DNA of 64,000 bases from Basidiobolus meristosporus CBS 931.73 (GCA_002104905.1 MCFE01000044.1:135527-199526); one strand, 5' to 3'; shown: positions 32,989 to 62,297, counted from the first letter of the stretch. Numbers and translations: made by a program. Notes: a model not told the origin generated them from the sequence alone.

Positions 32989-33368
32989 GAAAGCAGAAAT
33001 GAAGTAACTGTGTTCAAGTTGCGAGAGTCAAATCGTCTCGTATAAATACCCCCCTTGGATGCAGGTCTATACCCCTTCTATCCATGGCCATTATCCTGAG
33101 ACATGTGACGAAAATAGCCTGTGTGACATTGGCTATCTCTGCCACACTGTACCTTTGTGAACCCTTGATCATGTCTTGAAATATAAACACCAGACAGCCA
33201 GTACAGTTTGCCTATTGAGCATAACATAAACACTGGTGGACATTGAGCACCTTGCAAGTCACAATTTATGAAACCCAGTTTGGGTAACACCACCACATCA
33301 CGACAACATGATTATAATTATTGACTGAGCTTACAACGTGTGGGCGAATCTTCCTTCGATGCAATCAT

Positions 33369-36300
33369 TTAGGAGGAAATAGCGAGTGATTTGTGAGGGA
33401 GAGTAAGGGCTTCTTGAAGAATCTGCTTCTGTTCGTCCAAATGCCTCACATAAATCCCATTGGCCGGGGCAGCACACGCAGCCCGGCCAACATACTTGAG
33501 CTTGCAATGGTCCGGGAGAATCTGATTAAACCTCGGCTCCATGAAAGACCATGCACCGCCATTCTGAGTCTCCTCTTGGCACCAAACGAAGTCCGACACC
33601 CCAGAGTATTTCGCAATCTCCGCCTCCAAGTCGTCCTTGGGAAACGGGGTGAGCTCCTCCACTCTTACCAGGGCAATTTGATCGACCAGTGCCCTCTTGG
33701 TCTTTTCTTCTAACAATTCATAATACAATTTCCCCGAGACAAATATCACTCTACGCACCAACAGTCTATTCGCATGGATATCCGGAAGTACCGGCTGGAA
33801 GGAGGTCCCGGGTATGAAATCACTCATCTCTGACACTGCTAGTGGAATGCGAGTTAAGCGCTTAGGTCCGATGACGATAAGGGGCTTGCGGAAATTGCGT
33901 TTCATTTGACGACGCAGAACGTGGAAATATTGAGCAGGTGTAGAGCAGTTGACCACATGCCAGTTTACGTTGTTGCTAATGCTCGGGTTGGTGAGGTCGA
34001 AACGGTCACTAGAGAGCTGCAGGAAGCGTTCGATGCGGCTTGACGTATGCTCGGAACCCGCACCCTCGTACCCATGGGGAAGAATCAGTACTAAGCCAGA
34101 CTGACGTAGCCATTTCTCTTCTCCTCCCGATAGGCAACTGTCGATTACTTCCTGAGCCGAATTACAAAAATCCCCGATCTGGGCCTCCCATATGTTCAGT
34201 CTGTCTGGAGTTTCCAGGGACATCCCGTACTCATAACTCAGCACTGCCAGCTCCCCAAGTGGGCTATCCACTAGTTCGAGTTTCCGTCTATTTCCTGCAA
34301 GTGCATTCAGAGGAGTGTACTTGATATTAGTCTGCTGACAGTTGATCATTGCATGCCTTGCAATAAACACTCCTCGGGCCACATCCTGCCCGCAGAGTCT
34401 CGCATTGTATCCTTCAAGAAGGAGAGACCCTATGGCCATTGCCTCTGCAGTAGCGTATCCTATATTCTTTCCACTTGACATTTGCTCCAAGCGGGGTTCG
34501 ATGTTGAGCTTTCTCATTTTTTCATTGACCTGGATCTCTTCAGTAACTGTTACTGATTGGATCCCGATTTCACGCAGAAGATTCTCTTCCACGCCGGTAT
34601 TCATCTTGCTAACAGTTTCCAGCGGAATAACCATCGACCTCCATTTTCCCTGCATGCAAGATAGCTGGCCTTGAGAATATGGGGCTCTGCGATAGCATCT
34701 CATGATGTGTGCGTCATGCTTCGCCTTCATATCTGCAACAATCGAGGCGGAAGCGATTACCTTTTCTGCAGCGAGCTGTGAAGCGTACAAGTTGATTACG
34801 CTCTTGTGCATCTCGATCTCTTTGTACATCAAAGGTTGGGCACAGAATGGATCCTCAGCCTCGTGGTGTCCATGGCGACGATAAGTCACCATGTCAATGA
34901 TGATGTCCTTCCCAAAGGTCTTGCGGTAGTTGACTGCAATTCTACCTGCGATGGCTGCCAACTCCGGATAGTCACCGTTCACATGAATGACTGGGGTGTC
35001 GACCATTTTGCCTATATCCGACGAATACATCGTAGAGCGGCCGTTGGTGGCATCGGTAGTCACGCTAACCTGATTGTTGAGTATAATATGAATACTACCA
35101 CCAGTGGTAAAGTGTGGAAGGTTGGACAGACCAAATGTTTCAGCGACCACTCCTTGCCCGGTGAAGCCTCCGTCGCCATGGATCTGAACACTCATCACCA
35201 TATCCTCAGCATCTTTTCCATAGTCAGCCTGTTTAGCCCTTACTTTGCCAAGAGCAATAGGGTTCACAAGCTCCAAGTGGCACGGATTAGGAACCACGGA
35301 TATGTGTAGTGGACAAGCGCCACCGAGGTTTAAATCCACCGAGGCGTCGGAATTGTACACCAGATCCCCAATCAAGTGATCAGATGCACCCTCTGGAAAC
35401 TCCGAGAGCCCTTGGAATTTACGGAACAAGACTTCTCTAGGGACGCCAAGGAGCTCCATCATGACCTGCATACGACAGCGATGTGTTAGACACATCACCA
35501 CCTCGACTACTCCCGATCTACTAGCTTGCTCAAGGACCTGCTGAAGAGCCACCAATGCTCCTTCAGAACCTTCCAGGCTGAACTGCTTTTGGTGGCCACA
35601 TTCGCGCTTCATGAAATGATCGAAAGTCTCTGACCTGGCCATCAGCTCCAAAAACCGAATCTTCTCGTCTCTAGAAAATTCGGTGGCGATGCAGGTTTCC
35701 GCTTGACGAGCAAACCATCTCCGAAGATCATTGTCCTATCATTTGTGATCAGCCCGGGTTCTGGTAACTCCGCATCCGACAGGAAGGACCTACCGCAATA
35801 TGCATGAACTCGAACGATATGGGGCCGCAATAAACTTCATCCAAGTGACGAATGATATTCGCGAGAGTTGTGTACCTCTTTCCCTGGATATCCAAGATTC
35901 CTGAAGATCCGATCAATACCACGATCGGCAGCATCATAAAGTGGGCCTTACCCTCCAGTTGGTATTCAGCATTTGGATCGTCCAAACCATACAGCTCGGG
36001 CTCTAATGATGGGTCGCGTCTAGATGAACATACAGTCAGTTGCTACGTTTTCGTGGTGTTTCCCTGAGATCAAGCTTACCCTCGGTGCCACATATTCAAG
36101 GGGTCCAGCGACGCGCATTTATGACCAAAAGTGCGATATGCCTCTACGAGGCGAACAAGATTGCAATTTGTAACTCGATTGGCCTTCTCAGAGGCAGTGT
36201 CTGATGCAAATTCATTAGTATTTGACAAATTGTCAGATCTATTCCAGGCTTACATTCTAGGTTGGGGGCCTTTTTGATGGCTCGAGCTCCGTAAAAGGTA

Positions 36301-36407
36301 GATCTATTCGGAATTGGTATGGGCATAGCGGTGGGCATTTCAACGTGCTTAATTTGGGTGACTATCACACTTATATCCAATCGCCGCTTGAAACTCTTAT
36401 TTCCCAT
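33369..36407 (-). CDS. 2-oxoacid dehydrogenase E1, DHTKD1 (2-oxoadipate) clade, divergent; four 5' introns
   Basis: NRVTNCNLVRLVEAYRTFGHKCASLDPL, YCGPISFEFMH, NPCHLELVNP, HGDGGFTGQG...NNQ, WEAQIGDF and PHGYEGAGSEHTSSRIERFLQ. The exons join in frame into the 760-aa ORF. The start codon is approximate. Confidence 0.88.
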
Positions 36408-36639
36408 GTTGATGCCATTTCAATATCCGTACTCATGCATCGATCGACCACGTTTGAGGTTTATCTACATCGTGGCGGGTGATTTGTCTGTGTTGGGGGA
36501 GGTTTATCAAAGTTTTCATATTCACCTTGCTAGTCCAAACAAGCTCTATCTCAATTCCGCTATACAGCGTCTTTATTTAAATAATTGTATTTCTAATGAT
36601 AATTCAAAATGGTGTTTCCATTGATTCTAATCCAAATTC

Positions 36640-39600
36640 CTATGCCCAATCACATACGATTGATCCCTCAAATGCCCTACAGACTGTACCAGCAGCGCAA
36701 TGGTTTTGGATGAGCTTACCATTGGAGCACACTGTAAACTCCGGAGAAATATCCGAGTTGGCACAGGCGTAGGTTCCGTCTATACATTTAGAATCACCAG
36801 GTTTGGGTGAGGCGCCACCAGTACCAGCGGTAACAGTTGCAGTTACTGTAGCGGTGGTGACAAAGTTCTTAACGATAGTGGCTGTAGCGGGCTTACAATC
36901 ATTAGTTTGAGTAACTGTATGGACAGAGGTTACAGTAACCGAATGTATAACACTAGGCTGCAATGTAGCAGTTACTGTAACGGTGCTGACTTGAATATTA
37001 GTGGGTTGACTTTCAGGTCGGCTTGGCTCATTTGAATGAGAGGGTTTGTGGATTTCCGATTCACGCGAAATGGGGGTTTCCCAGACTCCACTTGGTTATG
37101 ATGCTTATCATTCGATTGCGAGTGGCTTACATCTGTGGCTCTAGATTGAATACCACTAGCAATATTGCCAGACATCGTAGGTGTCACCTTGGACTCGATT
37201 GAACCATGATTAGAAGTAGGTTGAAGACTGTCAGATCCAGTGGCATGATGCTCCTGAGAGTTGTGACCCTCCGACTTGGCAGGAACAGTAGGCTTCTGGG
37301 AGTTGTGACCCTCCGACTTGGCAGGCTCAGTAGGCTTCTGTGAGTTGTGACCCTCCGACTTGGCAGGCTCAGTAGGCTTCTGTGAGTTGTGACCCTCCGA
37401 CTTGGCAGGCTCAGTAGGCTTCTGTGAGTTGTGACCCTCCGACTTGGCAGGCTCAGTAGGCTTCTGTGAGTTGTGACCCTCCGACTTGGCAGGCTCAGTA
37501 GGCTTCTGGGAGCTGTGACCCTCCGACTTGGCAGGAACAGTAGGCTTCTGGGAGTTGTGACCCTCCGAATTGGCAGGCTCAGTAGGCTTCTGGGAGTTGT
37601 GACCCTCCGACTTGGCAGAGTCAGTAGGCTTCTGGGAGTTGTGACCCTCCGACTTGGCAGAGTCAGTAGGCTTCTGGGAGTTGTGACCCTCCGAATTGGC
37701 AGGCTCAGTAGGCTTCTGGGAGTTGTGACCCTCCGACTTGGCAGAGCCAGTAGACTTCGAAGACAAAGTAGAGGTAGCAATGGGACTTCCACTGTTGTTA
37801 TCCACAACAACCTTGGTTACATACTTAGTCTCGGTTCTAGTGGTGTAGCGAGTAGATTCCACAGGGGGGTGAGTCTTCACAGTGTGCTGACTACCAGAGT
37901 GGGTCTCGACCGAAGGCTTAGGAGTGACGGTTTCTACAACAGTACCAGTGACGACGGTAGTAATGGTATCAGTGGTGTAACTGTCGCTGTGGCCATGGGG
38001 AACTACAGATTGAGAACCAGTAGATCCAGTGGCGTGATGATCCTTAGAGTTGTGTCCCTCAGACTTGGCAGACTCGGTAGGCTTCGACGACAAGATCGAG
38101 GTAGCAATGGGACTTCCGCTGTTGTTGTCCACAACAACCTTGGTTACATACTGGGTCTCAGTTCTAGTGCTGTAGTGAGTGGACTCCACAGGAGCGTGAG
38201 TCTTCACGGTGTGATGACTGCCAGAATGAGTTTCAACCGAAGGCTTGGGAGTAATGGTTTCAACAACAGTGTCGGTCACGACAGTGGTGATCGTGTCAGT
38301 GGTGTAACTACCGCTATGGCCATGGGGAACTACAGATTGAGATCCTGCAGATCCAGTGGCGTGGCGCTCCTTAGAGTTGTGTCCCTCAGGCTTGGCAGAC
38401 TCGGTAGGCTTCGACGACAAGATGGAGGTGGCAATGGGGCTTCCGCTGTTGTTATCCACAACTACCTTGGTAACATACTGGGTCTCGGTTCTAGTGCTGT
38501 AGTGAGTGGACTCCACAGGAGCATGAGTCTTCACGGTGTGATGACTGCCAGAATGAGTTTCAACCGAAGGCTTGGGAGTAATGGTTTCAACAACAGTATC
38601 GGTCACCACAGTGGTGATCGTGTCAGTGGTGTAACTATCGCTATGGCCATGGGGAACTACAGATTGCGATCCTGCAGATCCAGTGGTGTGGCGTTCCTTA
38701 GAGTTGTGTCCCTCAGGCTTGGCAGACTCGGTAGGCTTCGACGACAAGATGGAGGTAGCAATGGGACTTCCGCTGTTGTTGTCCACAACTACCTTGGTTA
38801 CATACTGGGTCTCAGTTCTAGTGCTGTAGTGAGTGGACTCCACAGGAGCATGAGTCTTCACGGTGTGATGACTGCCAGAATGAGTTTCAACCGAAGGCTT
38901 GGGAGTAATGGTTTCAACAACAGTGTCGGTAACGACAGTGGTGATCGTGTCAGTGGTGTAACTACCGCTATGGCCATGGGGAACTACAGATTGAGATCCT
39001 GCAGATCCAGTGGCGTGGTGATCCTTAGAGTTGTGTCCCTCAGACTTGGCAGACTCGGTAGGCTTCGACGACAAGATGGAGGTGGCAATGGGGCTTCCGC
39101 TGTTGTTGTCCACAACAACCTTAGTAACATACTGGGTCTCAGTTCTAGTGCTGTAGTGAGTGGACTCCACAGGAGCATGAGTCTTCACGGTGTGATGACT
39201 GCCAGAATGAGTTTCAACCGAAGGCTTGGGAGTAATGGTTTCAACAACAGTATCGGTCACCACAGTGGTGATCGTGTCAGTGGTGTAACTATCGCTGTGG
39301 CCATGGGGAACTACAGATTGAGAACCAGTAGATCCAGTGGCGTGATGATCCTTAGAGTTGTGTCCCTCAGACTTGGCAGACTCGGTAGGCTTCGACGACA
39401 AGATCGAGGTAGCAATGGGACTTCCGCTGTTGTTGTCCACAACAACCTTGGTTACATACTGGGTCTCAGTTCTAGTGCTGTAGTGAGTGGACTCCACAGG
39501 AGCATGAGTCTTCACGGTGTGATGACTGCCAGAATGAGTTTCAACCGAAGGCTTGGGAGTAATGGTTTCAACAACAGTGTCGGTCACGACAGTGGTGATC

Positions 39601-42600
39601 GTATCAGTGGTGTAACTGCCGCTATGGCCATGGGGAACTACAGATTGTGATCCTGCAGATCCAGTGGCGTGGCGTTCCTTAGAGTTGTGTCCCTCAGACT
39701 TGGCAGACTGGGTAGGCTTCGACGACAAGATGGAGGTGGCAATGGGGCTTCCGCTGTTGTTGTCCACAACAACCTTGGTAACATACTGGGTCTCAGTTCT
39801 AGTGCTGTAGTGAGTGGACTCCACAGGAGCATGAGTCTTCACGGTGTGATGACTGCCAGAATGAGTTTCAACCGAAGGCTTGGGAGTAATGGTTTCAACA
39901 ACAGTGTCGGTCACGACAGTGGTGATCGTATCAGTGGTGTAACTGCCGCTATGGCCATGGGGAACTACAGATTGTGATCCTGCAGATCCAGTGGCGTGGC
40001 GTTCCTTAGAGTTGTGTCCCTCAGACTTGGCAGACTGGGTAGGCTTCGACGACAAGATGGAGGTGGCAATGGGGCTTCCGCTGTTGTTGTCCACAACAAC
40101 CTTGGTAACATACTGAGTCTCAGTTCTAGTGCTGTAGTGAGTGGACTCCACAGGAGCATGAGTCTTCACGGTGTGATGACTGCCAGAATGAGTTTCAACC
40201 GAAGGCTTGGGAGTAATGGTTTCAACAACAGTATCGGTCACGACAGTGGTGACCGTGTCAGTGGTGTAACTGCCGCTATGGCCATGGGGAACTACAGATT
40301 GCGATCCTGCAGATCCAGTGGCGTGGCGCTCCTTAGAGTTGTGTCCCTCAGGCTTGGCAGACTCGGTAGGCTTCGACGACAAGATGGAAGTAGCAATGGG
40401 ACTTCCGCTGTTGTTGTCCACAACTACCTTGGTTACATACTGAGTCTCGGTTCTAGTGCTGTAGTGAGTGGACTCCACAGGAGCATGAGTCTTCACGGTG
40501 TGATGACTGCCAGAATGAGTTTCAACCGAAGGCTTGGGAGTAATGGTTTCAACAACAGTGTCGGTCACCATGCTGGTGATCGTGTCAGTGGTGTAACTGC
40601 CGCTATGGCCATGGGGAACTACAGATTGCGATCCTGCAGATCCAGTGGCGTGGCGTTCCTTAGAGTTGTGTCCCTCAGACTTGGCAGACTCGGTAGGCTT
40701 CGACAAGATGGAAGTAGCAATGGGACTTCCGCTGTTGTTATCCACAACTACCTTGGTAACAAACTGAGTCTCGGTTCTAGTGCTGTAGTGAGTGGACTCC
40801 ACAGGAGCATGAGTCTTCACGGTGTGATGACTGCCAGATTGAGTTTCAACCGAAGGCTTGGGAGTAATGGTTTCAACAACAGTATCAGTCACGACAGTGG
40901 TGACCGTGTCAGTGGTGTAACTATCGCTGTGGCCATGGGGAACTACAGATTGAGAACCAGTAGATCCAGTGGCGTGGTGATCCTTAGAGTTGTGTCCCTC
41001 AGACTTGGCAGACTCGGTAGGCTTCGACGACAAGATGGAGGTGGCAATGGGGCTTCCGCTGTTGTTATCCACAACTACCTTGGTTACATACTGGGTCTCA
41101 GTTCTAGTGCTGTAGTGAGTGGACTCCACAGGAGCATGAGTCTTCACGGTGTGATGACTGCCAGATTGAGTTTCAACCGAAGGCTTGGGAGTAATGGTTT
41201 CAACAACAGTATCAGTCACGACAGTGGTGATCGTGTCAGTGGTGTAACTGCCGCTATGGCCATGGGGAACTACAGATTGTGATCCTGCAGATCCAGTGGC
41301 GTGATGATCCTTAGAGTTGTGTCCCTCAGACTTGGCAGACTCGGTAGGCTTCGACGACAAGATGGAGGTGGCAATGGGGCTTCCGCTGTTGTTATCCACA
41401 ACTACCTTGGTTACATACTGGGTCTCAGTTCTAGTGCTGTAGTGAGTGGACTCCACAGGAGCGTGAGTCTTCACGGTGTGATGACTGCCAGAATGAGTTT
41501 CAACCGAAGGCTTGGGAGTAATGGTTTCAACAACAGTATCGGTCACGACAGTGGTGATCGTGTCAGTGGTGTAACTGCCGCTATGGCCATGGGGAACTAC
41601 AGATTGAGATCCTGTAGATCCAGTGGCGTGGTGATCCTTAGAGTTGTGTCCCTCAGACTTGGCAGACTCGGTAGGCTTCGACGACAAGATCGAGGTAGCG
41701 ATGGGACTTCCGCTGTTGTTGTCCACAACTACCTTGGTAACATACTGGGTCTCGGTTCTAGTGCTGTAGTGAGTGGACTCCACAGGAGCATGAGTCTTCA
41801 CGGTGTGATGACTGCCAGAATGAGTTTCAACCGAAGGCTTGGGAGTAATGGTTTCAACAACAGTATCGGTCACGACAGTGGTGATCGTGTCAGTGGTGTA
41901 ACTGCCGCTATGGCCATGGGGAACTACAGATTGAGATCCTGTAGATCCAGTGGCGTGGTGATCCTTAGAGTTGTGTCCCTCAGACTTGGCAGACTCGGTA
42001 GGCTTCGACGACAAGATGGAGGTAGCGATGGGACTTCCGCTGTTGTTGTCCACAACTACCTTGGTTACATACTGGGTCTCAGTTCTAGTGCTGTAGTGAG
42101 TGGACTCCACAGGAGCGTGAGTCTTCACGGTGTGATGACTGCCAGAATGAGTTTCAACCGAAGGCTTGGGAGTAATGGTTTCAACAACAGTGTCGGTCAC
42201 CACGCTGGTGATCGTGTCAGTGGTGTAACTGCCGCTATGGCCATGGGGAACTACAGATTGAGATCCTGCAGATCCAGTGGCGTGGCGCTCCTTGGAGTTG
42301 TGTCCCTCAGGCTTGGCAGACTCGGTAGGCTTCGACGACAAGATGGAGGTGGCAATGGGGCTTCCGCTGTTGTTATCCACAACTACCTTGGTTACATACT
42401 GGGTCTCGGTTCTAGTGCTGTAGTGAGTGGACTCCACAGGAGCATGAGTCTTCACGGTGTGATGACTGCCAGAATGAGTTTCAACCGAAGGCTTGGGAGT
42501 AATGGTTTCAACAACAGTGTCGGTCACCACGCTGGTGATCGTGTCAGTGGTGTAACTGCCGCTATGACCATGAGGGGCTGAAGAGTGGAAGTTTACTGAC

Positions 42601-45600
42601 CCAGAGATATGTGGTTCCTTGGGGTTGTTACCATTTGACTTGCTGGGCTCAGTGGGTTCGCTAGGTAAGACCGAAGTAGCGATGGGGCTACCGCTATTAT
42701 TATCGATCACAACCTTGGTTATGTATTTTGTCTCAGTCCAGATAGTATAGCGAGTAGATTCGACAGGAATATAGGTTCTTGCGGTGTGCTTACTATCCGA
42801 TTGAGTGTCTATTGAGTGTTTAGGAGTAATAGTTTGAACTATTGTGGAGGTATGTGTTGACGTTATTGAACCCAGAGTTATGATGGTTTTATCACCATGA
42901 TTGGAGTGGCTTGCCAAATTTGTATGCGAGAATTTTGACGCGCTGGATGCGTACTCCTTCTTTGAAAGACTGCCTGTAGACTTCGTGGGCTTGTGCTCTT
43001 CGGAAGAGTGGGCAGCCTTTGACTTAGTGGGCTTGTGTTCTTCGCTAGGGTGGGTAGCCTTGGATTCGGTGGGCTTGTGCTCTTCGCTAGAGTGGGGAGC
43101 CTTTGATTCAGTGGGCTTGTGTTCTTGGCTAGAGCGGGGAGCCTTGGACTTAGGCTCTACACTTGAGTGGGCAGTCTTCGATTCCGTGGGCTTGTGCTCT
43201 TCGCTAGAATGGGGAGCCTTTGATTCACTAGGCTTGTGTTCTTCCCTGGAGTGGGCAGCTTTTGATTCTGTGGGCTTATGTTCTTCGCTAGAGTGGAGAG
43301 CCTTTGATTCAGTGGGCTTGTGTTCTTCGCTAGAGCGGGGAGCCTTTGATTCACTGGGCTTATGTTCTTCACTAGAGTGAGGAGCCTTTGATTCGGTGTG
43401 CCTGTGCTCTTCGCTTGAGTGGGTAGCCTTGGATTCAGTGGGCTTGTGTTCTTCGCTAGAGTGGAGAGCCTTTGATTCAGTGGGCTTGTGCTCTTCGCTA
43501 GAGCGGGGAGCCTTGGACTTGGGGGACTTGGGCTCTACACTTGAGTGGGCAGTCTTTGATTCAGTCGGCTTGTGCTCTTCGCTAGAGTGGGCAGCCTTTG
43601 ATTCAGTGGGCTCGTGCTTTTCGCTAGAGTGGGCAGCCTTTGATTCGGTGGGCTTGTGTTCTTCGCTAGAGTGGGGAGCCTTTGATTCAGTGGGCTTATG
43701 TTCTTCACTAGAGTGGGGAGCCTTGGACTTAGGCTCTACACTTGAGTGGGCAGTCTTTGATTCCGTGGGCTTGTGCTCTTCGCTAGAATGGGGAGCCTTT
43801 GATTCACTGGGCTTATGTTCTTCACTAGAGTGGGGAGCCTTTGATCCTGTGGGCTTGTGCTCTTCGCTAGAGTGGAGAGCCTTTGATTCGGTGGGCTTGT
43901 GTTCTTCGCTAGAGTGGAGAGCCTTTGATTCAGTGGGCTGGTGCTTTTCGCTAGAGTGGGGAGCCTCTGATTGGGTGGGCTTGTGCTCTTCGCTAGAGCG
44001 GGGAGCCTTGGACTTGGGGGACTTGGGCTCTACACTTGAGTGGGCAGTCTTTGATTCAGTCGGCTTGTGCTCTTCGCTAGAGTGGGCAGCCTTTGATTCA
44101 GTGGGCTCGTGCTTTTCGCTAGAGTGGGCAGCCTTTGATTCGGTGGGCTTGTGTTCTTCGCTAGAGTGGGGAGCCTTTGATTCACTGGGCTTATGTTCTT
44201 CACTAGAGTGAGGAGCCTTTGATTCGGTGTGCCTGTGCTCTTCGCTAGAGTGGGTAGCCTTTGATTCACTGGACTTGTGTTCTTCACTGGAGTGGGCAGC
44301 CTTTGATTCGGTGGGCTTGTGTTCTTCGCTAGAGTGGAGAGCCTTTGATTCAGTGGGCTTGTGCTCTTCGCTAGAGCGGGGAGCCTTGGACTTGGGGGAC
44401 TTGGGCTCTACACTTGAGTGGGCAGTCTTTGATTCAGTCGGCTTGTGCTTTTCGCTAGAGTGGGCAGCCTTTGATTCAGTGGGCTTGTGTTCTTCGCTAG
44501 AGTGGGGAGCCTTGGACTTAGGCTCTACACTTGAGTGGGCAGTCTTTGATTCCGTGGGCTTGTGCTCTTCGCTAGAATGGGGAGCCTTTGATTCACTGGG
44601 CTTATGTTCTTCACTAGAGTGGGGAGCCTTTGATCCTGAGGGCTTGTGCTCTTCGCTAGAGTGGGGAGCCTTTGATTCGGTGGGCTTGTGTTCTTCGCTA
44701 GAGTGGAGAGCCTTTGATTCAGTGGGCTGGTGCTTTTCGCTAGAGTGGGGAGCCTCTGATTGGGTGGGCTTGTGCTCTTCGCTAGAGCGGGGAGCCTTGG
44801 ACTTGGGGGACTTGGGCTCTACACTTGAGTGGGCAGTCTTTGATTCAGTCGGCTTGTGCTTTTCGCTAGAGTGGGCAGCCTTTGATTCGGTGGGCTTGTG
44901 CTCTTCGCTAGAGTGGGGAGCCTTTGATTCAGTGGGCTTGTGTTCTTGGCTAGAGCGGGGAGCCTTGGACTTAGGCTCTACACTTGAGTGGGCAGTCTTT
45001 GATTCCGTGGGCTTGTGCTCTTCGCTAGAATGGGGAGCCTTTGATTCACTGGGCTTATGTTCTTCACTAGAGTGGGGAGCCTTTGATCCTGTGGGCTTGT
45101 GTTCTTCACTAGAGTGGGGAGCCTTTGATCCTGTGGGCTTGTGTTCTTCGCTAGAGTGGAGAGCTTTTGTTTCAGTAGGCTGGTGCTTTTCACTGGAGTG
45201 GGGAGCCTTTGATTCACTGGGCTTATGTTCTTCACTAGAGTGGGGAGCCTTTGATTCGGTGGGCTTGTGTTCTTCGCTAGAGTGGAGAGCCTTTGATTCA
45301 GTGGGCTTGTGCTCTTCGCCAGAGTGGGGAGCCTTTGATTCAGTGGGCTTGTGCTCTTCGCTAGAGCGGGGAGCCTTGGACTTGGGGGACTTGGGCTCTA
45401 CACTTGAGTGAGACGCCTTCGATTCCGTGGGCTTGTGCTCTTCGCTAGAGTGGCCAGCCTTCGATTCAGTGGGCTCGTGCTTTTCGCTAGAGTGGGCAGC
45501 CTTTGATTCGGTGGGTTTGTGCTCTTCACTAGAGCGGGGAGCCTTGGACTTGGGGGACTTGGGCTCTAGACTTGAGTGAGACGCCTTCGATTCCGTGGGC

Positions 45601-48600
45601 TTGAGTTCAGCGCTAGAGTGGCCAGCCTTTGATCCTGTGGGCTTGTGTTCTTCGCTAGAGTGGGGAGCCTTTGATTCGGTGGGCTGGTGCTCTTCGCTAG
45701 AGCGGGGAGCCTTGGACTTGGGGGACTTGGGCTCTACACTTGAGTGGGCAGTCTTTGATTCAGTCGACTTGTGCTCTTCGCTAGAGTTGCCAGCCTTTGA
45801 TTCGGTGGGCTTGTGCTCTTCGCTAGAGCGGGGAGTCTTGGACTTGGGGGACCTAGTCTCTACGCTAGAGTGGGGAGCCTTTGATTCCGTGGGCTGGTGC
45901 TCTTCGCTAGAGCGGGGAGCCTTGGATTTGGGGGACTTGGGCTCTACACTTGAGTGAGACGCCTTCGATTCCGTGGGCTTGTGTTCTGCGCTAGAGTGGG
46001 CAGCATTTGACTCTGTGGGCTTGTGCTCTTCGCTAGAGTGGGGAGCCTTTGATTCAGTGGGCTGGTGCTTTTCGCTAGAGTGGGCAGCCTTTGATTCGGT
46101 GGGCTTGTGCTCTTCACTAGAGTGGGGAGCCTTTGATTCGGTGGGCTGGTGCTCTTCGCTAGAGCGGGGAGCCTTGGACTTGGGGGACTTGGGCTCTACA
46201 CTTGAGTGAGACGCCTTCGATTCCGTGGGCTTGTGTTCTGCGCTAGAGTGGGCAGCCTTTGACTCAGTGGGCTTGTGCTCTTCGCTAGAGTGGGCAGCCT
46301 TTGATTCGGTTGGCTTGTGTTCTTCGCTTGAGGGGGTAGCCTTAGACTTGGGGGACTTGGGCTCCACACTTGAGTGGGTAGTCTTGGATGCCGTGGGCTT
46401 GGGCTCTTCACTAGAGTGGGGAGTCTTTGATTCGGTGGGCTTATGCTCTTCACTAGAGTGGGGAGCCTTTGATTCAGTGTGCTTGTGCTCTTCGCTAGAG
46501 CGAGGAGCCTTAGACTTGGGAGACTTGGGCGCTACACTAGAATGAGAAGCCTTCGATTCGGTGGGCTTGTGTTCTTCGCTAGAGTGGGGAACCCTTGTTT
46601 CCGAGGACACAACGGCACTACTGCTGCTGCTCAATGTGCTACCTGGAACGGGTGACGTGTTGGTAGATGCCGATGAGACAGTGGTACTGCTACTGCTGCT
46701 GGATGTGCTACTTGGCGAAACAACTGGTGACGAGGTAGTGGTTGTCGATGACACAACGGCACTGCTGCTGCTGCTAGATGTGCTGCTTGGCGAAACAACT
46801 GGTGACGAGGTAGTGGTTGTCGATGACACAACGGCACTGCTGCTGCTGCTAGATGTGCTGCTCGGCGAAACAACTGGTGACGATGTAGAGGCTACCGATG
46901 ACTCGATGGCACTGCTGCTGCTGCTAGATGTGCTGCTCGGCGAAACAACTGGTGACGAGGTAGAGGCTACCGAGGACACGATGGCACTGCTACTGCTGCT
47001 AGATGTGCTGCTTGGCGAAACAACTGGTGACGAGGTAGTGGTTGTCGATGACACAACGGCACTGCTACTGCTGCTGCCAGATGTGCTACTTGGCGAAACA
47101 ACTGGTGACGAGGTAGAGGCTACCGATGACACGATGGCACTGCTGCTGCTGCTAGATGTGCTGCTCGGCGAAACAACTGGTGACGAGGTGGTGGTTGTCG
47201 ATGACACAACGGAACTGCTGCTGCTGCTAGATGTGCTGCTCGGCGAAACAACTGGTGACGAGGTAGAGGCTACCGATGACACGATGGCACTGTTGCTGCT
47301 GCTAGATGTGCTGCTAGGCGAAACAACTGGTGACGAGGTAGAGGCTACCGATGACACGATGGCACTGCTGCTGCTGCTAGATGTGCTGCTTGGCGAAACA
47401 ACTGGTGACGAGGTAGTGGTTGTCGATGACACAACGGCACTGCTGCTACTGCTAGATGTGCTGCTAGGCGAAACAACTGGTGACGAGGTAGAGGCTACCG
47501 ATGACACGATGGCACTGCTGCTGCTGCTAGATGTGCTGCTTGGCGAAACAACTGGTGACGAGGTAGAGGCTACCGATGACACGATGGCACTGCTGCTGCT
47601 GCTAGATGTGCTGCTAGGCGAAACAACTGGTGACGAGGTAGTGGTTGTCGATGACACAACGGCACTGCTGCTGCTGCTAGATGTGCTGTTCGGCGAAACA
47701 ACTGGTGACGAGGTAGAGGCTACCGATGACACGATGGCACTGCTGCTGCTGCTAGATGTGCTGCTCGGCGAAACAACTGGTGACGAAGTAGTGGTTGTCG
47801 ATGACACAACGGCACTGCTGCTGCTGCTGGACGTGCCACTTGGCGAAGAAACGGGTGACGAGTTGGTAGATGTCAATGAGGTAATGGTACTGCTGCTGCT
47901 AGATGTGCTGCTACTGCCAGAAGTAGGTTTAGTGCTTGAGTCAGAGCTGGAGCTGGTGGTCTGTTTAGAACATGGACCTGATACCGGTGTTCCTGGTATA
48001 TTACAGGCGTACTGCACTAGGCCTTGGTAACCACAAACGTCTCCTTGAGCACAACATATAATTTGTGGTCCATTTCCTTGGTTACAGTAGTACATGTGGC
48101 CACTATTTTCGGAGTCGCAATAGTAGTAGTTGCCTGCGGCGGTATTCTTGCATTGGTCAATCACGTTTTGAGGAATTTTCGGGGTGTTAGTCACCGAGCT
48201 AGCGGCACTAGTGCTGGTACCTGATGGAGAACTTGGAGCAGCCTGAGAACTAGAGGCGGAAGCAGTGGAGGTAGATGTGCTACTTTGGGACACAACAGTT
48301 GGTGAGCTTGGGGATGCTAATGCGGAAGTAGTACCGGTGCTACTGCTGGTAATGCTAGTGCTGGTGCTGCTGCTAGATGTGCTGTTACTGCCAGAAGTAG
48401 GTGCGGTGCTTGAGCCAGAGCTGGAGCTGGTGGTCTGTTTAGAACATGGACCAGACACCGGTGTTCCTGGTATATTACAGGCGTACTGCACTAGGCCTTG
48501 GTAGCCACAAACGTCTCCTTGAGCACAACATATAATTTGTGGTCCATTTCCTTGGTTACAGTAGTACATGTGACCACTATTTTCGGAGTCGCAATAGTAG

Positions 48601-51600
48601 TAGTTGCCTGCGGCGGTATTCTTGCATTGGTCAATCACGTTTTGAGGAATGTTCGGGGTGTTAGTCACCGAGCTAGCGGCACTAGTGCTGGTACCTGATG
48701 GAGAACTTGGAGCAGCCTGAGAACTAGAGGCGGAAGCAGTGGAGGTAGATATGCTGCTTGGGGACACAACAGGAGATGAGCTTGTGGATGCCAATGCGGA
48801 AGTAGTCCCGGTGCTGCTGCTGGTGCTGCTGGCGTTACTGCTAGATGTGCTGTTACTGCCAGAAGTAGGTGCAGAGCTTGAGTCAGAGCTGGAGCTGGTG
48901 GTCTGTTTAGAACATGGACCTGATACCGGTGTTCCTGGTATATTACAGGCGTACTGCACTAGGCCTTGGTAACCACAAACGTCTCCTTGAGCACAACATA
49001 TAATTTGTGGTCCATTTCCTTGGTTACAGTAGTACATGTGACCACTATTTTCGGAGTCGCAATAGTAGTAGTTGGCTGCGGCGGTATTCTTGCATTGGTC
49101 AATCACGTTTTGAGGAATCTTCGGGGTGTTGGTTACCGAGCTAGCAGTACTAGTGCTGGTACCTGATGGAGAACTTGGAGCAGCCTGAGAACTAGAGGCG
49201 GAAGCAGTGGAGGTAGATGTACTACTTGGGGACACAACAGTTGGTGAGCTTGGGGATGCTAATGCGGAAGTAGTACCGGTGCTACTGCTGGTAATGCTAG
49301 TGCTGGTGCTGCTGCTAGATGTGCTGTTACTGCCAGAAGTAGGTGCGGTGCTTGAGCCAGAGCTAGAGCTGGTGGTTTGTTTAGAGCATGGACCTGATAC
49401 CGGTGTTCCTGGTATATTACAGGCGTACTGCACTAGGCCTTGGTAACCACAAACGTCTCCTTGAGCACAACATATAATTTGTGGTCCATTTCCTTGGTTA
49501 CAGTAGTACATGTGGCCACTATTTTCTGAGTCGCAATAATAGTAGTTGGCTGCAGCGGTATTCTTGCATTGGTCAATCACGTTTTGGGGAATCTTGGGGG
49601 TGTTGGTCACCGAGCTAGCAGTACTAGTGCTGGTACCAGATGGAGAACTTGGGACAGGCTCAGAACTGGAAACTGAAGCAGTGGAGGTAGATGTGCTGCT
49701 TGGGGGCACAACAGGAGATGAGCTTGTGGATGCTGATGAAATAGTGGTGCTGGTGCCGGTGCTGCTGCTAGATGTGCTGCTACTGCCAGAAGTAGGTGCG
49801 GTGCTGGAGTCAGAGCTGGAGCTGGTGGTTTGCTTAGAACATGGACCTGATACCGGTGTTCCTGGTACATTACACGCGTACTCTACCAGGCCTTGGTAGC
49901 CGCAAACGTCTCCTTGGGCACAACACATAACTTCTGGTCCATTTCCTTGGTTACAGTAGTACATGTGGCCACTATTTTCCGAGTCGCAATAGTAGTAGTT
50001 GCCATAAGCTGTATTCTTGCACTGGTCAATCACGTTTTGAGGAATCTTAGGGGTGTTGGTTACCGAGCTAGCAGTACTAGTGCTGGTACCAGATGGAGAA
50101 CTTGGGACAGGCTCAGAACTGGAAACTGAAGCAGTGGAGGTAGATGTGCTGCTTGGGGGCACAACAGGAGATGAGCTTGTGGATGCTGATGAAATAGTGG
50201 TGCTGGTGCTGGTGCTGCTGCTGCTGCTAGATGTGCTGCTACTGCCAGAAGTAGGTGCGGTGCTGGAGTCAGAGCTGGAGCTGGTGGTTTGCTTAGAACA
50301 TGGACCTGATACCGGTGTTCCTGGTACATTACACGCGTACTCTACCAGGCCTTGGTAGCCGCAAACGTCTCCTTGGGCACAACACATAACTTCTGGTCCA
50401 TTTCCTTGGTTACAGTAGTACATGTGGCCACTATTTTCCGAGTCGCAATAGTAGTAGTTGCCATAAGCTGTATTCTTGCACTGGTCAATCACGTTTTGAG
50501 GAATCTTAGGGGTGTTGGTGACCGAGGTAGCAGTACTAGTGCTAGTACCAGATGGAGAACTTGGCACGGCCTGAGAACTAGAAACCGAAGCAGTGGAGGT
50601 AGATGTGCTGCTTGGGGGCACAACAGGAGATGAGCTTGTGGATGTTGATGAAATAGTGGTGCTGGTGCTGGTGCTGCTGCTAGATGTGCTGCTACTGCCA
50701 GAAGTAGGTGCGGTGCTGGAGTGAGAGCTGGAGCTGGTGGTCTGTTTAGAACATGGACCAGATACCGGTGTTCCTGGTACATTACACGCGTACTCTACCA
50801 GGCCTTGGTAGCCGCAAACGTCTCCTTGGGCACAACACATAACTTCTGGTCCATTTCCTTGGTTACAGTAGTACATGTGACCACTATTTTCTGAGTCGCA
50901 ATAGTAGTAGTTGCCATAAGCTGTATTCTTGCATTGGTCAATCACGTTTTGAGGAATCGTAGGGGTGTTGGTGACCGAGCTAGCAGTACTAGTGCTGGTA
51001 CCTGATGGAGAACTTGGGAGAGGCTCAGAACTGGAAACCGAAGCAGTGGAGGTAGATGTGCTGCTTGGGGGCACAACAGGAGATGAGCTTGTGGATGCTG
51101 ATGAAATAGTGGTGCTGGTGCTGCTGCTAGATGTGTTGCTACTGCCAGAAGTAGGTGCGGTGCTGGAGTCAGAGCTGGAGCTGGTGGTCTGTTTAGAACA
51201 TGGACCAGATACCGGTGTTCCTGGTACATTACACGCGTACTCTACCAGGCCTTGGTAGCCGCAAACGTCTCCTTGGGCACAACACATAACTTCTGGTCCA
51301 TTTCCTTGGTTACAGTAGTACATGTGGCCACTATTTTCCGAGTCGCAATAGTAGTAGTTGCCATAAGCTGTATTCTTGCACTGGTCAATCACGTTTTGAG
51401 GAATCTTAGGGGTGTTGGTGACCGAGCTAGCAGTACTAGTGCTGGTACCAGATGGAGAACTTGGCACGGCCTGAGAACTAGAAACCGAAGCAGTGGAGGT
51501 AGATGTGCTGCTTGGGGGCACAACAGGAGATGAGCTTGTGGATGCTGATGAAATAGTGGTGCTGGTGCTGGTGCTGCTGCTAGATGTGCTGCTACTGCCA

Positions 51601-52613
51601 GAAGTAGGTGCGGTGCTGGAGTCAGAGCTGGAGCTGGTGGTCTGTTTAGAACATGGACCAGATACCGGTGTTCCTGGTACATTACACGCGTACTCTACCA
51701 GGCCTTGGTAGCCGCAAACGTCTCCTTGGGCACAACACATAACTTCTGGTCCATTTCCTTGGTTACAGTAGTACATGTGACCACTATTTTCTGAGTCGCA
51801 ATAGTAATAGTTGCCATAAGCTGTATTCTGGCATATGTCAATCACATCTTGTGGAATCTTGGGGGTGCTTGTCACTGAGCTTGAAGTACTAGTGCTGGTA
51901 CCAGATGGAGAACTTGGGAGAGGCTCAGAACCGGAAACCGAAGCAGTGGAGGTAGATATGCTGCTTGGGGACAGAACAGGAGATGAGCTAGGGGATGTTG
52001 TGGAGACGGTGCTACTGGTGCTGCTGCTAGATGTGCTGCTACTGCCAGATGTAGGTGCGGTGCTGGAGTCAGAGCTGGAGCTGGTGGTCTGTTTAGAACA
52101 TGGACCAGACACCGGTGTTCCTGGTACATTACACGCGTACTCTACCAGGCCTTGGTAGCCGCAAATGTCGCCTTGAGCACAACACATAATTTCTGGTCCA
52201 TATCCCTGGTTACAGTAGTACATGTGGCCACTATTTTCTGAGTCGCAATAGTAGTAGTTGCCATAAGCTGTATTTTGGCATATGTCTATCACGTTTTGAG
52301 GTATCTTGGAGCTATCCATCACATAGCTATCACCACTGGTGCTCGAACTGGCAGCTGAGCTAGAAGGATAGCTGCACACTGGATTAACTCCATTATCATG
52401 GCAAACTTGACCTGCGGGACACGCCTGCGGAGACCATTCTCCATTAGTGCACTCACCGATACTCTGTGAGTCAAGGCATTTGAAGGCTCCTTCAGTGCAC
52501 TCGACGGTGCTCCTAGCCACCAACTGATTGTGGCCTTGAACCGGGGGCTGCGGTAGTGCAACACTCGTTGACGTAAGAGCAATGCCTGCTATTACTGTAG
52601 TAGCAAAACGCAT
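36640..52613 (-). CDS. Giant intronless secreted mucin/adhesin-like repeat protein with CBM19-like and 8-Cys modules (about 5,324 aa if a 1-nt indel near 37077 is repaired)
   Basis: The 5213-aa ORF starts MRFATTVIAGIALTSTSVALP. A second frame continues with the same composition (SEIHKPSHSNEPSRPESQPT) into a terminal 6-Cys domain ending CDWA*. The span is 15,974 nt; adding 1 nt makes it divisible by 3. Confidence 0.85.
37255..37750 (-). repeat. Coding tandem repeat, 42-nt unit (SEGHNSQKPTEPAK), about 12 copies
   Basis: GTTGTGACCCTCCGA (or a 1-nt variant) recurs every 42 nt from about 37260 to 37722. Confidence 0.95.
37760..42900 (-). repeat. Coding tandem repeat, 327-nt (109-aa) unit: 14 near-identical copies plus 2 diverged flanking copies
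   Basis: TETQYVTKVVVDNNSGSPIATS recurs every 327 nt (one unit of 324 nt). The end copies read TETKYITKVVIDNN and TETKYVTKVVVDNN. Confidence 0.95.
42975..46590 (-). repeat. Coding tandem repeat, 42-nt unit (HSSEEHKPTESKAP) interspersed with HSSVEPKSPKSKAPR variants; roughly 85 units by length
   Basis: GGGCTTGTGTTCTTCGCTAGAGTGGGGAGCCTTTGATTCAGT and variants repeat continuously. Confidence 0.95.
46660..47900 (-). repeat. Coding tandem repeat, 75-nt (25-aa) Ser/Thr/Val unit: 15 copies plus 1 degenerate
   Basis: GGCGAAACAACTGG at 46714, 46789, 46864 ... 47767. Two unit types are present (VVSSTTTT and IVSSVAST). Confidence 0.95.
47950..52310 (-). repeat. Ten tandem ~450-470-nt units, each an 8-Cys module plus a Ser/Thr linker
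   Basis: YYYCDSENSGHMYYCNQG occurs 10 times (near 48100, 48570, 49040, 49510, 49965, 50425, 50880, 51325, 51780 and 52230). Confidence 0.95.
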
Positions 52614-53259
52614 TGTTGTTACTCCGAAGTGATTGCACCAGTAGCATTAACAATGCTTTTATATGGAGGTAGTTGAATTAATTGGGAAACCGCAATTTTC
52701 GAAATTCGCCGATGGCTACTAGAACATCGAGATCCGGAGATTCGTGTTGGTTGGTATCTGTTTATCAAGATCTAAAGGAGAATTTTCGGTGAAATGTGAC
52801 GTATTCGCCAGACTCTCTTCTCGTGGTTTCGACTTATTAACGACACTACGAATGAAAATTTCCTATTATTTTGCCACTATCGCCATCGAGAAAATGACCG
52901 TCATATTTACTGTTTCTGATCATGCTTGTCCTGTTTCGTGTTCGTAAAATCATTGGTGGCAGGTTCCTTCCGCTAGAATTCTTATATCATTAATATTTTG
53001 TTACGCTTCAACTACCCTGAGAATATTCGACCAAATTACCCGATTTGTAAATCCACTAAAATTGAACATCCAACGAAACAGCTTGCCCTCTAATCTCTTT
53101 GCGACAATGATAGGTCATTTGTAAAGACAGTCCCTCTGCCTCCCACGTGAAGATAGCGTTACAAAAGAGGATATTTTATTGTACCTTGATTGACTATAAA
53201 GATTTCATACCTGCCTTTTAATCTAGAAAATGATATCCATCGGATGTGATTACCCGGGA

Positions 53260-59100: not shown

Positions 59101-59354
59101 GGTTTTCATGCTTTGCGCAGCTCCGGTATGATAATCTGCACTTTTTCCTACTACAAACAAATATTGAGGCCTTGTGCTGGAATAGGGTTTGGGGAAATCG
59201 TTACCAAAAAGTGATCCGTTTTTTTCAAGTCAAAACAAAGAAACAGTAGCCTCCTAACCAAAAAGTCAAGAGAAGGGGCATTGGATGACTAGGTATTCCG
59301 CCCCAACTAAATATTAATTATTGTTATTGAACCAATACAAACAGATTTATACTA

Positions 59355-59695
59355 ACTCTGAAGGTTTACCAAGCGCTGTTTGCTTTTGCATACACTACTT
59401 TCAATCTTTACACATTGGGTGGCCTGGATTGCAATTGCACGAAAACTCAACCTTGGTGCCTGTGACATTAGCAGATCTTGCGTGGTAATCTGCGGGGATC
59501 TTCAATCATCGACAAACAAGTGTGGTTTTAATCACTTCTGAGTTGCCTCTGCCTACTATAGCCATCACCGTGAGTCATAGCACCACCTTCGCCGGCGTAA
59601 TCCTTCGTGTTTTATCCGCGTTCAAGATCGGCTGCACTCACCATGGACATGGCAGAAGCTGCGAGAAGAAGTCTGACTGAAGAGATTTTTGTATT
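59355..59695 (-). pseudogene. Possible relic of a small secreted Cys-rich protein gene
   Basis: TATAAAT at 59732-59738, then a signal-like KISSVRLLLAASAMSMVSAADLERG* lacking an initial ATG. A shifted frame gives FSCNCNPGHPMCKD*K*CMQK with internal stops. Confidence 0.3.
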
Positions 59696-60290
59696 GAGCA
59701 GTTGATTTGCTGCATTCGGATTCAACTCGCCATTTATAGCCTTTCAATGTCTCAAATAGGCATGGTTTCCGTTGATCCCAGGAGCAACATTTAGGGATTG
59801 TGTGTGTTACAAAACTTCCGTGAGTCAGGAACTATAAATACCATCCAAAGAATCATTTACATTATGCACGATCTCGTCGGATCTTCCTTTAGGGTGTAGG
59901 TGCTGTAGCAAAGGTTAGAAATTGATCGTAAATGAGTGCTGCAAATGCAAGATGGGGTACTAATGGATATTCTCATAGCCTCTAAGAGCCACGCTGACTC
60001 ACCAGACTTCCCAAGAAAAAAATTCTTGATTTTTACAATGTTTGGGGCTAAAATGAACAATTCTTAGAGTTATGGTGATATGGAAGTCACTAAAGTAGAC
60101 AAAATATAGAGGAGGGGAGGAAAGTCATCATGACAGTAAAATCTTAACTTTGCTAAGTAGTTACAAAAATCACCAAGGCTAAAAAATATAGAAGCCAGCT
60201 AAGAGTTTCAATTTCCTAAGTAATTAATTATACTTAAACTTGGTTTCTTGGGTAATATTGCACTGAGCTAAATGAAGTACTTCTTGAGAG

Positions 60291-60496: not shown

Positions 60497-60523
60497 TTAG
60501 GGTTAGGGGTTGGGGTCAGGGGG
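60496..60523 (+). repeat. Interstitial degenerate telomere-like tract
   Basis: G TTAGGG TTAGGGG TTGGGG TCAGGGGG. Confidence 0.6.
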
Positions 60524-62286: not shown

Positions 62287-62297
62287 CTCCCACTCAG

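Follow-up and report, generated by a model that had tools for sequence, protein, structure and literature searches.

An unannotated single-exon gene for a secreted repeat protein of about 5,300 residues in Basidiobolus meristosporus

Described systems closest in architecture

Chitin-binding domains are joined with mucin domains in peritrophins and insect intestinal mucins. The protein of Basidiobolus meristosporus CBS 931.73 described here, encoded in a stretch of 64,000 nucleotides of contig MCFE01000044.1 (the window), is like the peritrophins and invertebrate intestinal mucins in that it is predicted to be secreted and anchorless, with small 6-Cys chitin-binding-type domains beside long Ser/Thr-rich O-glycosylated regions. 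The signal peptide, the lack of an anchor, the type of domain and a content of 37% Ser plus Thr constitute a likeness of architecture, not of descent. CBM14 structures were also the best, though not decisive, fold match of the terminal domain. The peritrophins differ in being animal proteins with other Cys spacing and without the His-rich block, the 109-aa block or the 8-Cys module, and the Basidiobolus protein is several times larger than the peritrophins and invertebrate intestinal mucins.

BAD-1 of Blastomyces dermatitidis has a signal peptide, consists to more than 80% of tandem repeats and lacks a GPI anchor; after its release a chitin-binding C-terminal Cys-rich domain keeps it on the wall, and the repeats bind divalent cations (PMC3708853). 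Compared by architecture only, both proteins have a signal peptide, tandem repeats and a Cys-rich C-terminal domain and are free of a GPI anchor, whereas BAD-1, at 120 kDa, has just one kind of repeat (Trp-rich disulfide loops) and carries its EGF-like anchor at only one of its ends. An earlier note on this DNA, made from the sequence alone, had not recognised the architecture from described proteins; peritrophins and insect intestinal mucins, together with BAD-1 (PMC3708853), provide such precedents.

The CBM19 domain of fungal chitinases (yeast Cts1, Rhizopus) is likewise fungal, has six Cys in about 45 residues and was the best Pfam match at both ends of the protein. These enzymes contain a catalytic domain, which is missing from the Basidiobolus protein, and the domains of the latter score below the cutoff. 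Up to 11 tandem chitin-binding modules are present in multi-CBM18 proteins of Batrachochytrium dendrobatidis, and one in Avr4 of Cladosporium fulvum; these proteins are proposed or shown to bind the chitin of their own wall (PMC3569864). They are similarly fungal and secreted and carry chitin-binding modules, with Avr4 among the fold matches, but CBM18 is hevein-type and belongs to another family, and these proteins are small and without giant repeat stalks.

The GPI-anchored yeast adhesins (Als, Flo, Epa) share the signal peptide, the long Ser/Thr-rich tandem repeats and the beta-prone Thr/Val/Ile segments; the Basidiobolus protein is without their GPI signal and without an Ig-like or PA14 ligand-binding head. 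A Pfam search gave no Ig-like or PA14 domain and no Candida_ALS match, the N-terminus being a 6-Cys CBM-type domain. All scores in an ESM Atlas feature search were below 0.9, and the 109-aa repeat was nearest to a Candida ALS repeat cluster (0.82), which is a lead only. No description of giant Basidiobolus genes of this kind was found in the literature searched on Basidiobolus chitin-binding, histidine-rich, adhesin, mucin and CBM19 proteins.

The gene and its reading frame

The coding region occupies 36640-52613 on the minus strand of the window, corresponding to 172166-188139 of the MCFE01000044.1 record, as one exon without introns, and none of the annotated gene models covers it. B. meristosporus is a frog-gut fungus and a member of Zoopagomycota, the type of fungus that the earlier note had suggested. 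From 52613 to 36972 an ORF of 5,213 codons (about 15.5-15.6 kb) was open across five different arrays; a stop at 36972 interrupts it in the window as given, and the terminal 6-Cys domain (36652-36786) lies in another frame than the upstream ORF. Contigs from two public read runs, X2 and X3, have a further G after 37071, so that the G5 homopolymer of 37072-37076 is one nucleotide longer; this brings the terminal domain into frame and joins the ORF. With this G restored, the true product is predicted to have about 5,324 aa and a peptide mass near 548 kDa. A short intron was rejected as an explanation for the shifted frame, since the GT..AG intervals near 37130-37090 were only 27-45 nt and of the wrong length modulo 3, and since the read contigs differ by 1 nt in the homopolymer. 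The gene is, as had been claimed, a single intronless one of about 16 kb for about 5,300 aa, but it is not intact as given, its frame breaking at the 37072-37076 homopolymer with a stop at 36972. Expression support comes from the single X2 contig, whose run type is guessed only as 'DNA?'; the runs listed included none of RNA.

A relative was found in Basidiobolus ranarum (P0016/L003), in which 109-aa repeats, a His-rich stretch, a Thr/Val segment and the terminal domain follow in one frame (E 5e-27). The 109-aa copies of P0016 were 59% identical to those of the B. meristosporus protein, and its end was about 70% identical to the C-terminal domain; its UniRef name, 'Chitin-binding type-2 domain-containing protein', is automatic. 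Downstream of the gene, the B. ranarum contig showed no similarity to the window, so that orthologue and paralogue are not separable for P0016. A search with residues 1-180 as query found no giant annotated relatives. The ORF, the pN/pS values given below, the TATA box and AATAAA signal (Table 1), the frame join by the extra G and the B. ranarum relative establish the locus as a genuine gene: a real, unannotated single-exon gene for a secreted repeat protein of about 5,300 residues.

Table 1. Features of the locus, in the order of transcription (positions in the window)
Feature	Position	Strand	Basis or remark
TATA box, TATAAAAG	52656..52663	-	Read from sequence; 43-50 nt upstream of start codon
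Start codon and signal peptide, about residues 1-21, MRFATTVIAGIALTSTSVALP	52551..52613	-	ORF start; hydrophobicity
N-terminal 6-Cys CBM19/CBM14-type domain (putative), residues 39-80	52374..52499	-	P0001 homology; AF2 pLDDT >90; VIA Z 5.5
Ten copies of 151-aa unit: Tyr-rich 8-Cys module (71 aa) plus Ser/Thr linker	47891..52307	-	TRF 453 nt x 9.6; modules listed
About 16 copies of 25-aa Ser/Val/Thr repeat, 53% Ser	46670..47862	-	TRF 75 nt x 15.9; composition
About 87 copies of 14-aa His/Glu/Lys repeat, consensus HSSEEHKPTESKAP, 12% His	42985..46601	-	TRF 42 nt x 87, 78% matches
About 16 copies of 109-aa Thr/Val/His repeat, first and last degenerate	37720..42965	-	TRF 327 nt x 14.9 (37720-42572)
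12 copies of second 14-aa repeat, SEGHNSQKPTEPAK	37250..37758	-	TRF 42 nt x 12.1
Homopolymer (G5 on + strand), site of frame break	37072..37076	-	X2 and X3 contigs one G longer; frames read
Thr/Val-rich beta-prone segment with lone Cys (codon 36895-36897)	36817..36990	-	Translation; Cys conserved in alignment with B. ranarum P0016
C-terminal 6-Cys CBM19/CBM14-type domain (putative), ending CDWA, and stop codon (36640-36642)	36640..36786	-	Pfam; likeness to P0016
Probable 3' UTR	36566..36639	-	AATAAA at 36572-36577; X2 contig ends at 36566

Domains and repeat blocks of the predicted protein

Repeat arrays were defined by Tandem Repeats Finder (TRF), and copy numbers are those of one assembly. 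By TRF and translation, the signal peptide and first 6-Cys domain are followed by ten 8-Cys modules with Ser/Thr linkers, the 25-aa repeats, the His/Glu/Lys 14-mers, the 109-aa repeats, the second 14-mers, the Thr/Val segment and the terminal 6-Cys domain. This is the order read in the earlier note, which had counted 15 copies of the 25-aa repeat and about 85 of the His/Glu/Lys 14-mer, against about 16 and about 87 here. The signal peptide was the sole Kyte-Doolittle window above 1.4 across the entire protein, and the hydrophobicity scan of the whole protein detected neither a TM segment nor a GPI-type tail (the C-terminus reads ...SIVCDWA), in agreement with the earlier claim of a secretion signal without TM or GPI anchor. 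The total number of Cys residues is 93, which is odd.

The N-terminal domain has the pattern C-x6-C-x8-C-x9-C-x5-C-x8-C. With Pfam CBM_19 (PF03427, gathering cutoff 20.1 bits), the C-terminal domain scored 15.8 bits (E 0.014) and the N-terminal domain 14.3 bits (E 0.04), and with CBM_14 (PF01607, gathering cutoff 22.1 bits) the C-terminal domain scored 14.3 bits (E 0.046), all below cutoff. The nearest homologue, P0001, which matches the N-terminal region at E 4e-15, was above both thresholds (CBM_19, 42.4 bits; CBM_14, 29.3 bits). All six Cys were invariant in an alignment of 29 domains of about 45 residues (A1), for 15 of which CBM_19 was the best family; the Trp of the NGxW motif is absent from the C-terminal domain in this alignment.

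In the VIA fold comparison of the N-terminal domain, the CBM14 domain of CHIT1 led with Z 5.5, EHEP was also among the top rows, and Der p 23 (4.6), a CBM14 NMR structure (4.3) and Avr4 (4.2) followed, with unrelated rows at 2.9 or below; all Z values were below 8 and are not decisive. Every Foldseek match of the terminal-domain fold had an E-value above 0.01, and the Swiss-Prot fold list consisted mostly of peritrophins, obstructor, CPG-2 and Rhizopus chitinases (C-terminal regions of chitinase 1/2). When PDB sequences were searched with the 6-Cys profile, just weak partial matches (eggshell CREMP, CBM1) and no solved CBM19 structure for comparison were obtained. On their sequences and modelled fold, both terminal domains are classed as divergent CBM19/CBM14-type domains, sub-threshold themselves but with a homologue above threshold and a putative CBM14-like fold. 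The likeness to CBM19 suggested earlier for the 6-Cys domains is thus supported by several lines (P0001 at 42.4 bits, the putative CBM14 fold), their own Pfam scores being sub-threshold, and the Cys spacing quoted with it applies to the 6-Cys domains and not to the 8-Cys modules, in which the spacing is different.

All ten 8-Cys modules follow the pattern C-x10-C-x10-C-x9-CC-x5-C-x9-C-x10-C, with pN/pS of 0.16 among them at pS 0.22. Comparison of the module with the 6-Cys family by hhalign gave a probability of 3.5% (E 0.012) with four Cys in register, which is not significant, nor were the 2.6 bits obtained by hmmsearch with the A1 profile; a word search found no homologues. P0002 and P0003, obtained by HMMER from 1.84 billion representatives, were rejected as relatives of the module and taken as compositional matches, being Cys-less with YYVDxQGxGH repeats. 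An AF2 model built without alignment was unusable (pLDDT about 40-58). In these comparisons the module is an orphan, detectable CBM19 homology being absent, and the '11 binding modules at one end' of the earlier note are an assumption, given the hhalign probability of 3.5% and the lack of homologues for the ten 8-Cys modules.

The four kinds of repeat together contain 37% Ser plus Thr and 323 His. In the His/Glu/Lys 14-mer two His lie five residues apart with Glu flanking, and this block makes up about 23% of the protein. The 109-aa repeat has 15 SYTTDT registers and pN/pS of 0.13 overall and 0.05 over the first 70 codons; AF2 without alignment left two such repeats unfolded (pLDDT 38, unusable). 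Across the 8-Cys modules and 109-aa repeats pS was 0.12-0.22, and a search for long identical duplicates, the 14-aa array included, found none. Since the copies have diverged under purifying selection (pN/pS 0.05-0.16), the repeats are not a duplication made by assembly.

Proposed function and alternatives

The best explanation, with a probability of roughly 0.55, is that an anchorless, secreted protein, predicted to be heavily O-glycosylated, is held non-covalently on chitin in the wall or matrix that the fungus itself makes. Once secreted, the Cys-rich domains would bind chitin non-covalently, and the protein would thereby be held on, or would cross-link, the chitin of its own wall or extracellular matrix. 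The stalk of about 3,600 residues may form a hydrated mucin-like coat, to which the His/Glu/Lys block might give responsiveness to pH or metal ions, and in which the Thr/Val-rich repeats could make beta-type contacts. This role is suggested by analogy: peritrophins and insect intestinal mucins act so on chitin fibrils, and BAD-1 is so retained on wall chitin.

A long-range tether or glue that links the wall of the fungus at one end to foreign chitin, such as arthropod cuticle, at the opposite end, for example at the adhesive tip of capilliconidia, is purely conjectural and unlikely. Chitin-binding-type domains do lie at either end of a very long stalk, Basidiobolus makes adhesive capilliconidia that are carried by arthropods, and His-rich repeats are found in metal-cross-linked bioadhesives; however, the outer cuticle of arthropods is a layer of wax and protein that leaves the chitin unexposed, and double-ended binding suits the cross-linking of own chitin equally. 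Insect dispersal of Basidiobolus is mentioned in PMC13370150 and PMC9391592.

By analogy, the modules might instead cover wall chitin while a protease-resistant mucin coat stops the chitinases and proteases in the guts of frogs and reptiles that eat insects. The fold appears to be of the type found in Avr4 and CBM14, multimodularity would raise avidity, Avr4 protects the wall and such protection has been proposed for the Batrachochytrium CBM18 proteins (PMC3569864), and herptile guts are a habitat of Basidiobolus (PMC9391592). Shielding, however, needs neither a stalk of 3,600 residues nor His-rich repeats, and it is a special case of retention on own chitin, not a true alternative; as a separate account it is rather improbable.

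That the protein is a wall-bound reservoir or scavenger of metals (Zn, Cu, Ni, Fe) or a scaffold for mineralisation, its Cys domains serving merely as anchors, would accord with the 323 His, the Glu-flanked His pairs of the 14-mer and the binding of Ca, Zn and Cu by BAD-1 repeats (PMC3708853), but it is quite improbable, as the His-rich block is just about 23% of the protein and other blocks are conserved as strongly or more so. A non-functional locus, either an assembly artefact in which repeats collapsed or expanded, or a gene turned pseudogene by frameshift, to which the frame break at 37072-37076, the absent gene model and copy numbers from one assembly might point, is highly improbable in view of an ORF open for 15.5 kb through five different arrays, copies 12-22% diverged at synonymous sites with low pN/pS, the absence of long identical duplicates, the in-frame homopolymer length in two read sets and a B. 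ranarum relative intact over the same junction.

The widest reading, which is speculative and rather doubtful, would be that the gene belongs to an unannotated family, confined to Basidiobolus, of chitin-binding tethers that are double-ended and half a megadalton in size, in which the Tyr-rich 8-Cys module is a new carbohydrate-binding domain and the His-rich stalk is switched by metal or pH, and that this family serves as the adhesive or fibrillar coat by which spores stick to arthropods and survive insectivore guts. Should the terminal domains bind chitin, as retention on the fungus's own wall supposes, a non-Dikarya fungus would display huge glycoproteins without GPI anchoring, a convergence on the animal peritrophin/mucin design. 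The 8-Cys module is a candidate new carbohydrate-binding domain, and the gene a concrete candidate for the adhesive of Basidiobolus spores.

This 16-kb gene was wholly missed by gene prediction, and surveys of the secretome or cell wall in early-diverging fungi thus overlook what are possibly their largest surface proteins; real genes broken by homopolymer indels in this assembly call for caution. Telomere repeats (TTAGGG x3) were absent from the 64-kb window. The gene sits in a TE-rich region at the contig end, a setting similar to that of yeast adhesin genes, which are subtelomeric.

Reading frame and annotation status

The giant gene, a single-exon gene for a secreted repeat protein, appears to be unannotated. 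In the GenBank annotation, no gene is called over window positions 36408-38744, though the adjacent 2-oxoglutarate dehydrogenase gene does appear there; residues 30-175 gave no self-match by HMMER among 1.84 billion representatives (best match, 38% identical), and no B. meristosporus protein was retrieved by word searches with the N-terminus, the 8-Cys module or the 109-aa repeat. No paper describing such genes was found in the literature on Basidiobolus. A neighbouring gene, matched exactly at the protein level, assigns the window to Basidiobolus meristosporus CBS 931.73. Window positions are converted to positions in the record (MCFE01000044.1, GCA_002104905.1) by adding 135,526. Repeat copy numbers are those of this assembly.

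Features of the giant gene and its flanks (window positions)
Feature	Position	Strand	Description	Source
ORF	52613 to 36972	minus	5,213 codons, ending at stop 36972	
TATAAAAG box	43-50 nt upstream of giant-gene ATG	minus		sequence
Array 1	giant gene		453 nt x 9.6	Tandem Repeats Finder
Array 2	giant gene		75 nt x 15.9	Tandem Repeats Finder
Array 3	giant gene		42 nt x 87	Tandem Repeats Finder
Array 4	giant gene		327 nt x 14.9	Tandem Repeats Finder
Array 5	giant gene		42 nt x 12.1	Tandem Repeats Finder
G5 run	37072-37076		site of frame break	
Lone Cys codon	36895-36897		Thr/Val segment, outside any Cys domain	
Stop codon after second 6-Cys domain	36640-36642	minus		
AATAAA	63 nt past giant-gene stop codon	minus		sequence
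2-Oxoglutarate dehydrogenase E1 gene	33369-36407	minus	938 aa, with introns	GenBank annotation
Region upstream of giant gene	52614-64000		retroelement debris only, without ordinary genes	
LINE-type RT ORF	61008-61934		absent from record as a gene	
Copia-type RT/RNase H ORFs	62298-63979			

An open frame of 15.5 kb that crosses five unrelated arrays and also encodes homologous Cys domains is not a product of chance. The repeat copies are conserved at the protein level; synonymous divergence between copies (pS) was 0.22 among 8-Cys modules and 0.12 among 109-aa repeats. The corresponding pN/pS values were 0.16 and 0.13, with 0.05 over the first 70 codons of a 109-aa unit. No long identical duplicates were found in the His-rich array.

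The Thr/Val segment and the second 6-Cys domain, which ends in CDWA, lie in a frame other than that of the ORF. Logan contigs of three public read runs (X1, X2 and X3) were aligned to window 33300-37250. The X2 and X3 contigs carried one extra G behind 37071, inside the G5 run, which shifts the frame exactly as required to join the terminal domain; apart from this G, the X2 contig matched the window without a difference for 685 nt, and contigs of X1, from the same sample as X3, break at the run. The break is most simply explained by a homopolymer indel of the assembly; it may instead be a polymorphism, and an intron was rejected as its source, no plausible intron being present. With the two frames joined and X written at the break, the product comprises 5,324 residues (~548 kDa before glycosylation).

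A B. ranarum protein, KAK9687806.1, encoded on the 5,080-bp contig JASJQH010008596.1, combines in one frame copies of the 109-aa repeat (59% identity), a stretch rich in His, the Thr/Val segment including its lone Cys, and the terminal domain, and matches the out-of-frame piece of the window with an E-value of 5e-27. This single-frame layout provides independent support for the joined frame. The KAK9687806.1 model begins at an internal Met; the frame (contig positions 2-1330) starts within a 109-aa-type repeat and is open to contig base 2, and the B. ranarum gene is therefore cut off by its assembly and under-annotated. Since no similarity was found downstream of the gene between the B. ranarum contig and the window, the protein is called a relative, not an orthologue.

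Domain architecture

The signal peptide is followed by a 6-Cys domain at residues 39-80, with the spacing C-x6-C-x8-C-x9-C-x5-C-x8-C, and by ten Tyr-rich 8-Cys modules of 71 aa, with the spacing C-x10-C-x10-C-x9-CC-x5-C-x9-C-x10-C. A Ser/Thr linker of ~80 aa follows each module. Next come ~16 Ser/Val/Thr 25-mers (53% Ser), ~87 His/Glu/Lys 14-mers (consensus, HSSEEHKPTESKAP), ~16 Thr/Val/His 109-mers and 12 more 14-mers. Overall, Ser and Thr make up 37% of the protein, and His occurs 323 times. The signal peptide is the sole hydrophobic stretch, so that the protein has neither a TM segment nor a GPI-type tail. The Cys total (93) is odd because of the lone Cys, which is kept in B. ranarum and could be free or intermolecular.

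Both terminal 6-Cys domains scored below Pfam cutoffs (CBM_19 best, 15.8 and 14.3 bits versus 20.1; CBM_14, 14.3 bits). The nearest homologue of the N-terminal region is the database protein P0001 (E 4e-15; 251 aa, four 6-Cys domains), which exceeds the cutoffs (CBM_19, 42.4 bits; CBM_14, 29.3 bits). The six Cys were invariant across 29 aligned 6-Cys domains, for 15 of which CBM_19 was the best family. The AF2 model of the N-terminal domain reached pLDDT >90 even without an alignment, and every one of its best structural matches binds chitin, namely the CHIT1 CBM14 domain (Z 5.5), Aplysia EHEP (5.2), Der p 23 (4.6), a CBM14 NMR structure (4.3) and Avr4 (4.2), with unrelated rows at Z <=2.9. 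The Swiss-Prot fold list, with weak E-values, held mostly CPG-2, obstructor-E, peritrophins, Rhizopus chitinases 1/2, AMCase and chitotriosidase. From these alignments and models, we class the terminal domains as divergent CBM19/CBM14-type domains and putative chitin binders.

The 8-Cys module is apparently a new domain, no true homologue being found in either protein database searched. Four of its Cys lie in the register expected from the 6-Cys family; profile comparison with that family was not significant (probability 3.5%, 2.6 bits), and the AF2 model was poor. Its seven to eight Tyr and strong constraint would fit a putative carbohydrate-binding surface. Two Cys-less database proteins (P0002 and P0003; 840-930 aa, with repeats of the type YYVDxQGxGHxFYP) matched its Tyr-rich part (E 1e-8 to 1e-7), probably as compositional matches. 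For the 109-aa repeat, Pfam gave no match and AF2 no confident fold; the nearest Atlas clusters were Candida ALS repeats, flocculin and other yeast wall repeats (scores <=0.82, leads only). These clusters and the alternating Thr/Val strands suggest a beta-prone glycosylated stalk element.

Proposed binding to the fungal wall

The predicted protein is secreted and anchorless. It has chitin-binding-type domains at both ends and multiple extra Cys modules, is mucin-like in composition and includes a His-rich block. Once secreted, such a protein would bind chitin non-covalently and multivalently, coat or cross-link chitin in the wall or matrix of the fungus itself, and project a hydrated stalk from it. 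Charge and metal binding of the His/Glu/Lys block (pI ~7) would shift between acidic and neutral surroundings and, more speculatively, the lone Cys might pair with another molecule through a disulfide, in the manner of gel-forming mucins. Working precedents are the peritrophins and the intestinal mucins of insects. The Blastomyces repeat adhesin BAD-1 is released and then becomes fixed to chitin of the wall through a C-terminal Cys domain, and its repeats bind Ca, Zn and Cu (PMC3708853); for Batrachochytrium multi-CBM18 proteins and Avr4, protection of wall chitin against chitinases has been proposed or shown (PMC3569864). These serve as further precedents for the proposed mechanism.

An attractive special case of own-wall binding is a shield against chitinases and proteases during passage through the insectivore gut. 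The earlier note, which correctly guessed a Zoopagomycota-type fungus (the host is Basidiobolus meristosporus), proposed a tether between wall and arthropod cuticle or a glue of adhesive spores. The protein may act as such a tether or as a capilliconidial glue, but no result ranks this above attachment to the wall of the fungus itself. The giant gene is best regarded as a fungal version, new and unusual in size, of the design combining chitin-binding modules with mucin; it is of interest to the study of fungal walls and cautions against gaps in annotation.

Possible transcript end, flanks and sequence differences

The X2 contigs (26.7 Mb in total) covered at least the last 750 nt of the giant gene at a word depth of 49. 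One ends at 36566, six bases beyond AATAAA, with nothing across 3.2 kb downstream. This resembles a transcript 3' end and hence expression, and is suggestive only, X2 being labelled 'DNA?' with no RNA runs among the listed public runs. On the same strand, ~160 nt separate the probable poly(A) site from the start of the 2-oxoglutarate dehydrogenase E1 gene downstream. The contig ends with the window, and no TTAGGG x3 array was found in the window up to that end.

In the short spacer between the giant gene and the dehydrogenase gene, the X1 and X3 contigs differ from the assembly at 36410 and 36475 (3 nt missing and one C added), which are further assembly indel errors or polymorphisms. Over 36640-37250, the X1 and X3 contigs differ by ~1% SNPs (1 versus 7 other letters), and their common sample apparently has two haplotypes or nuclear types of the giant gene.
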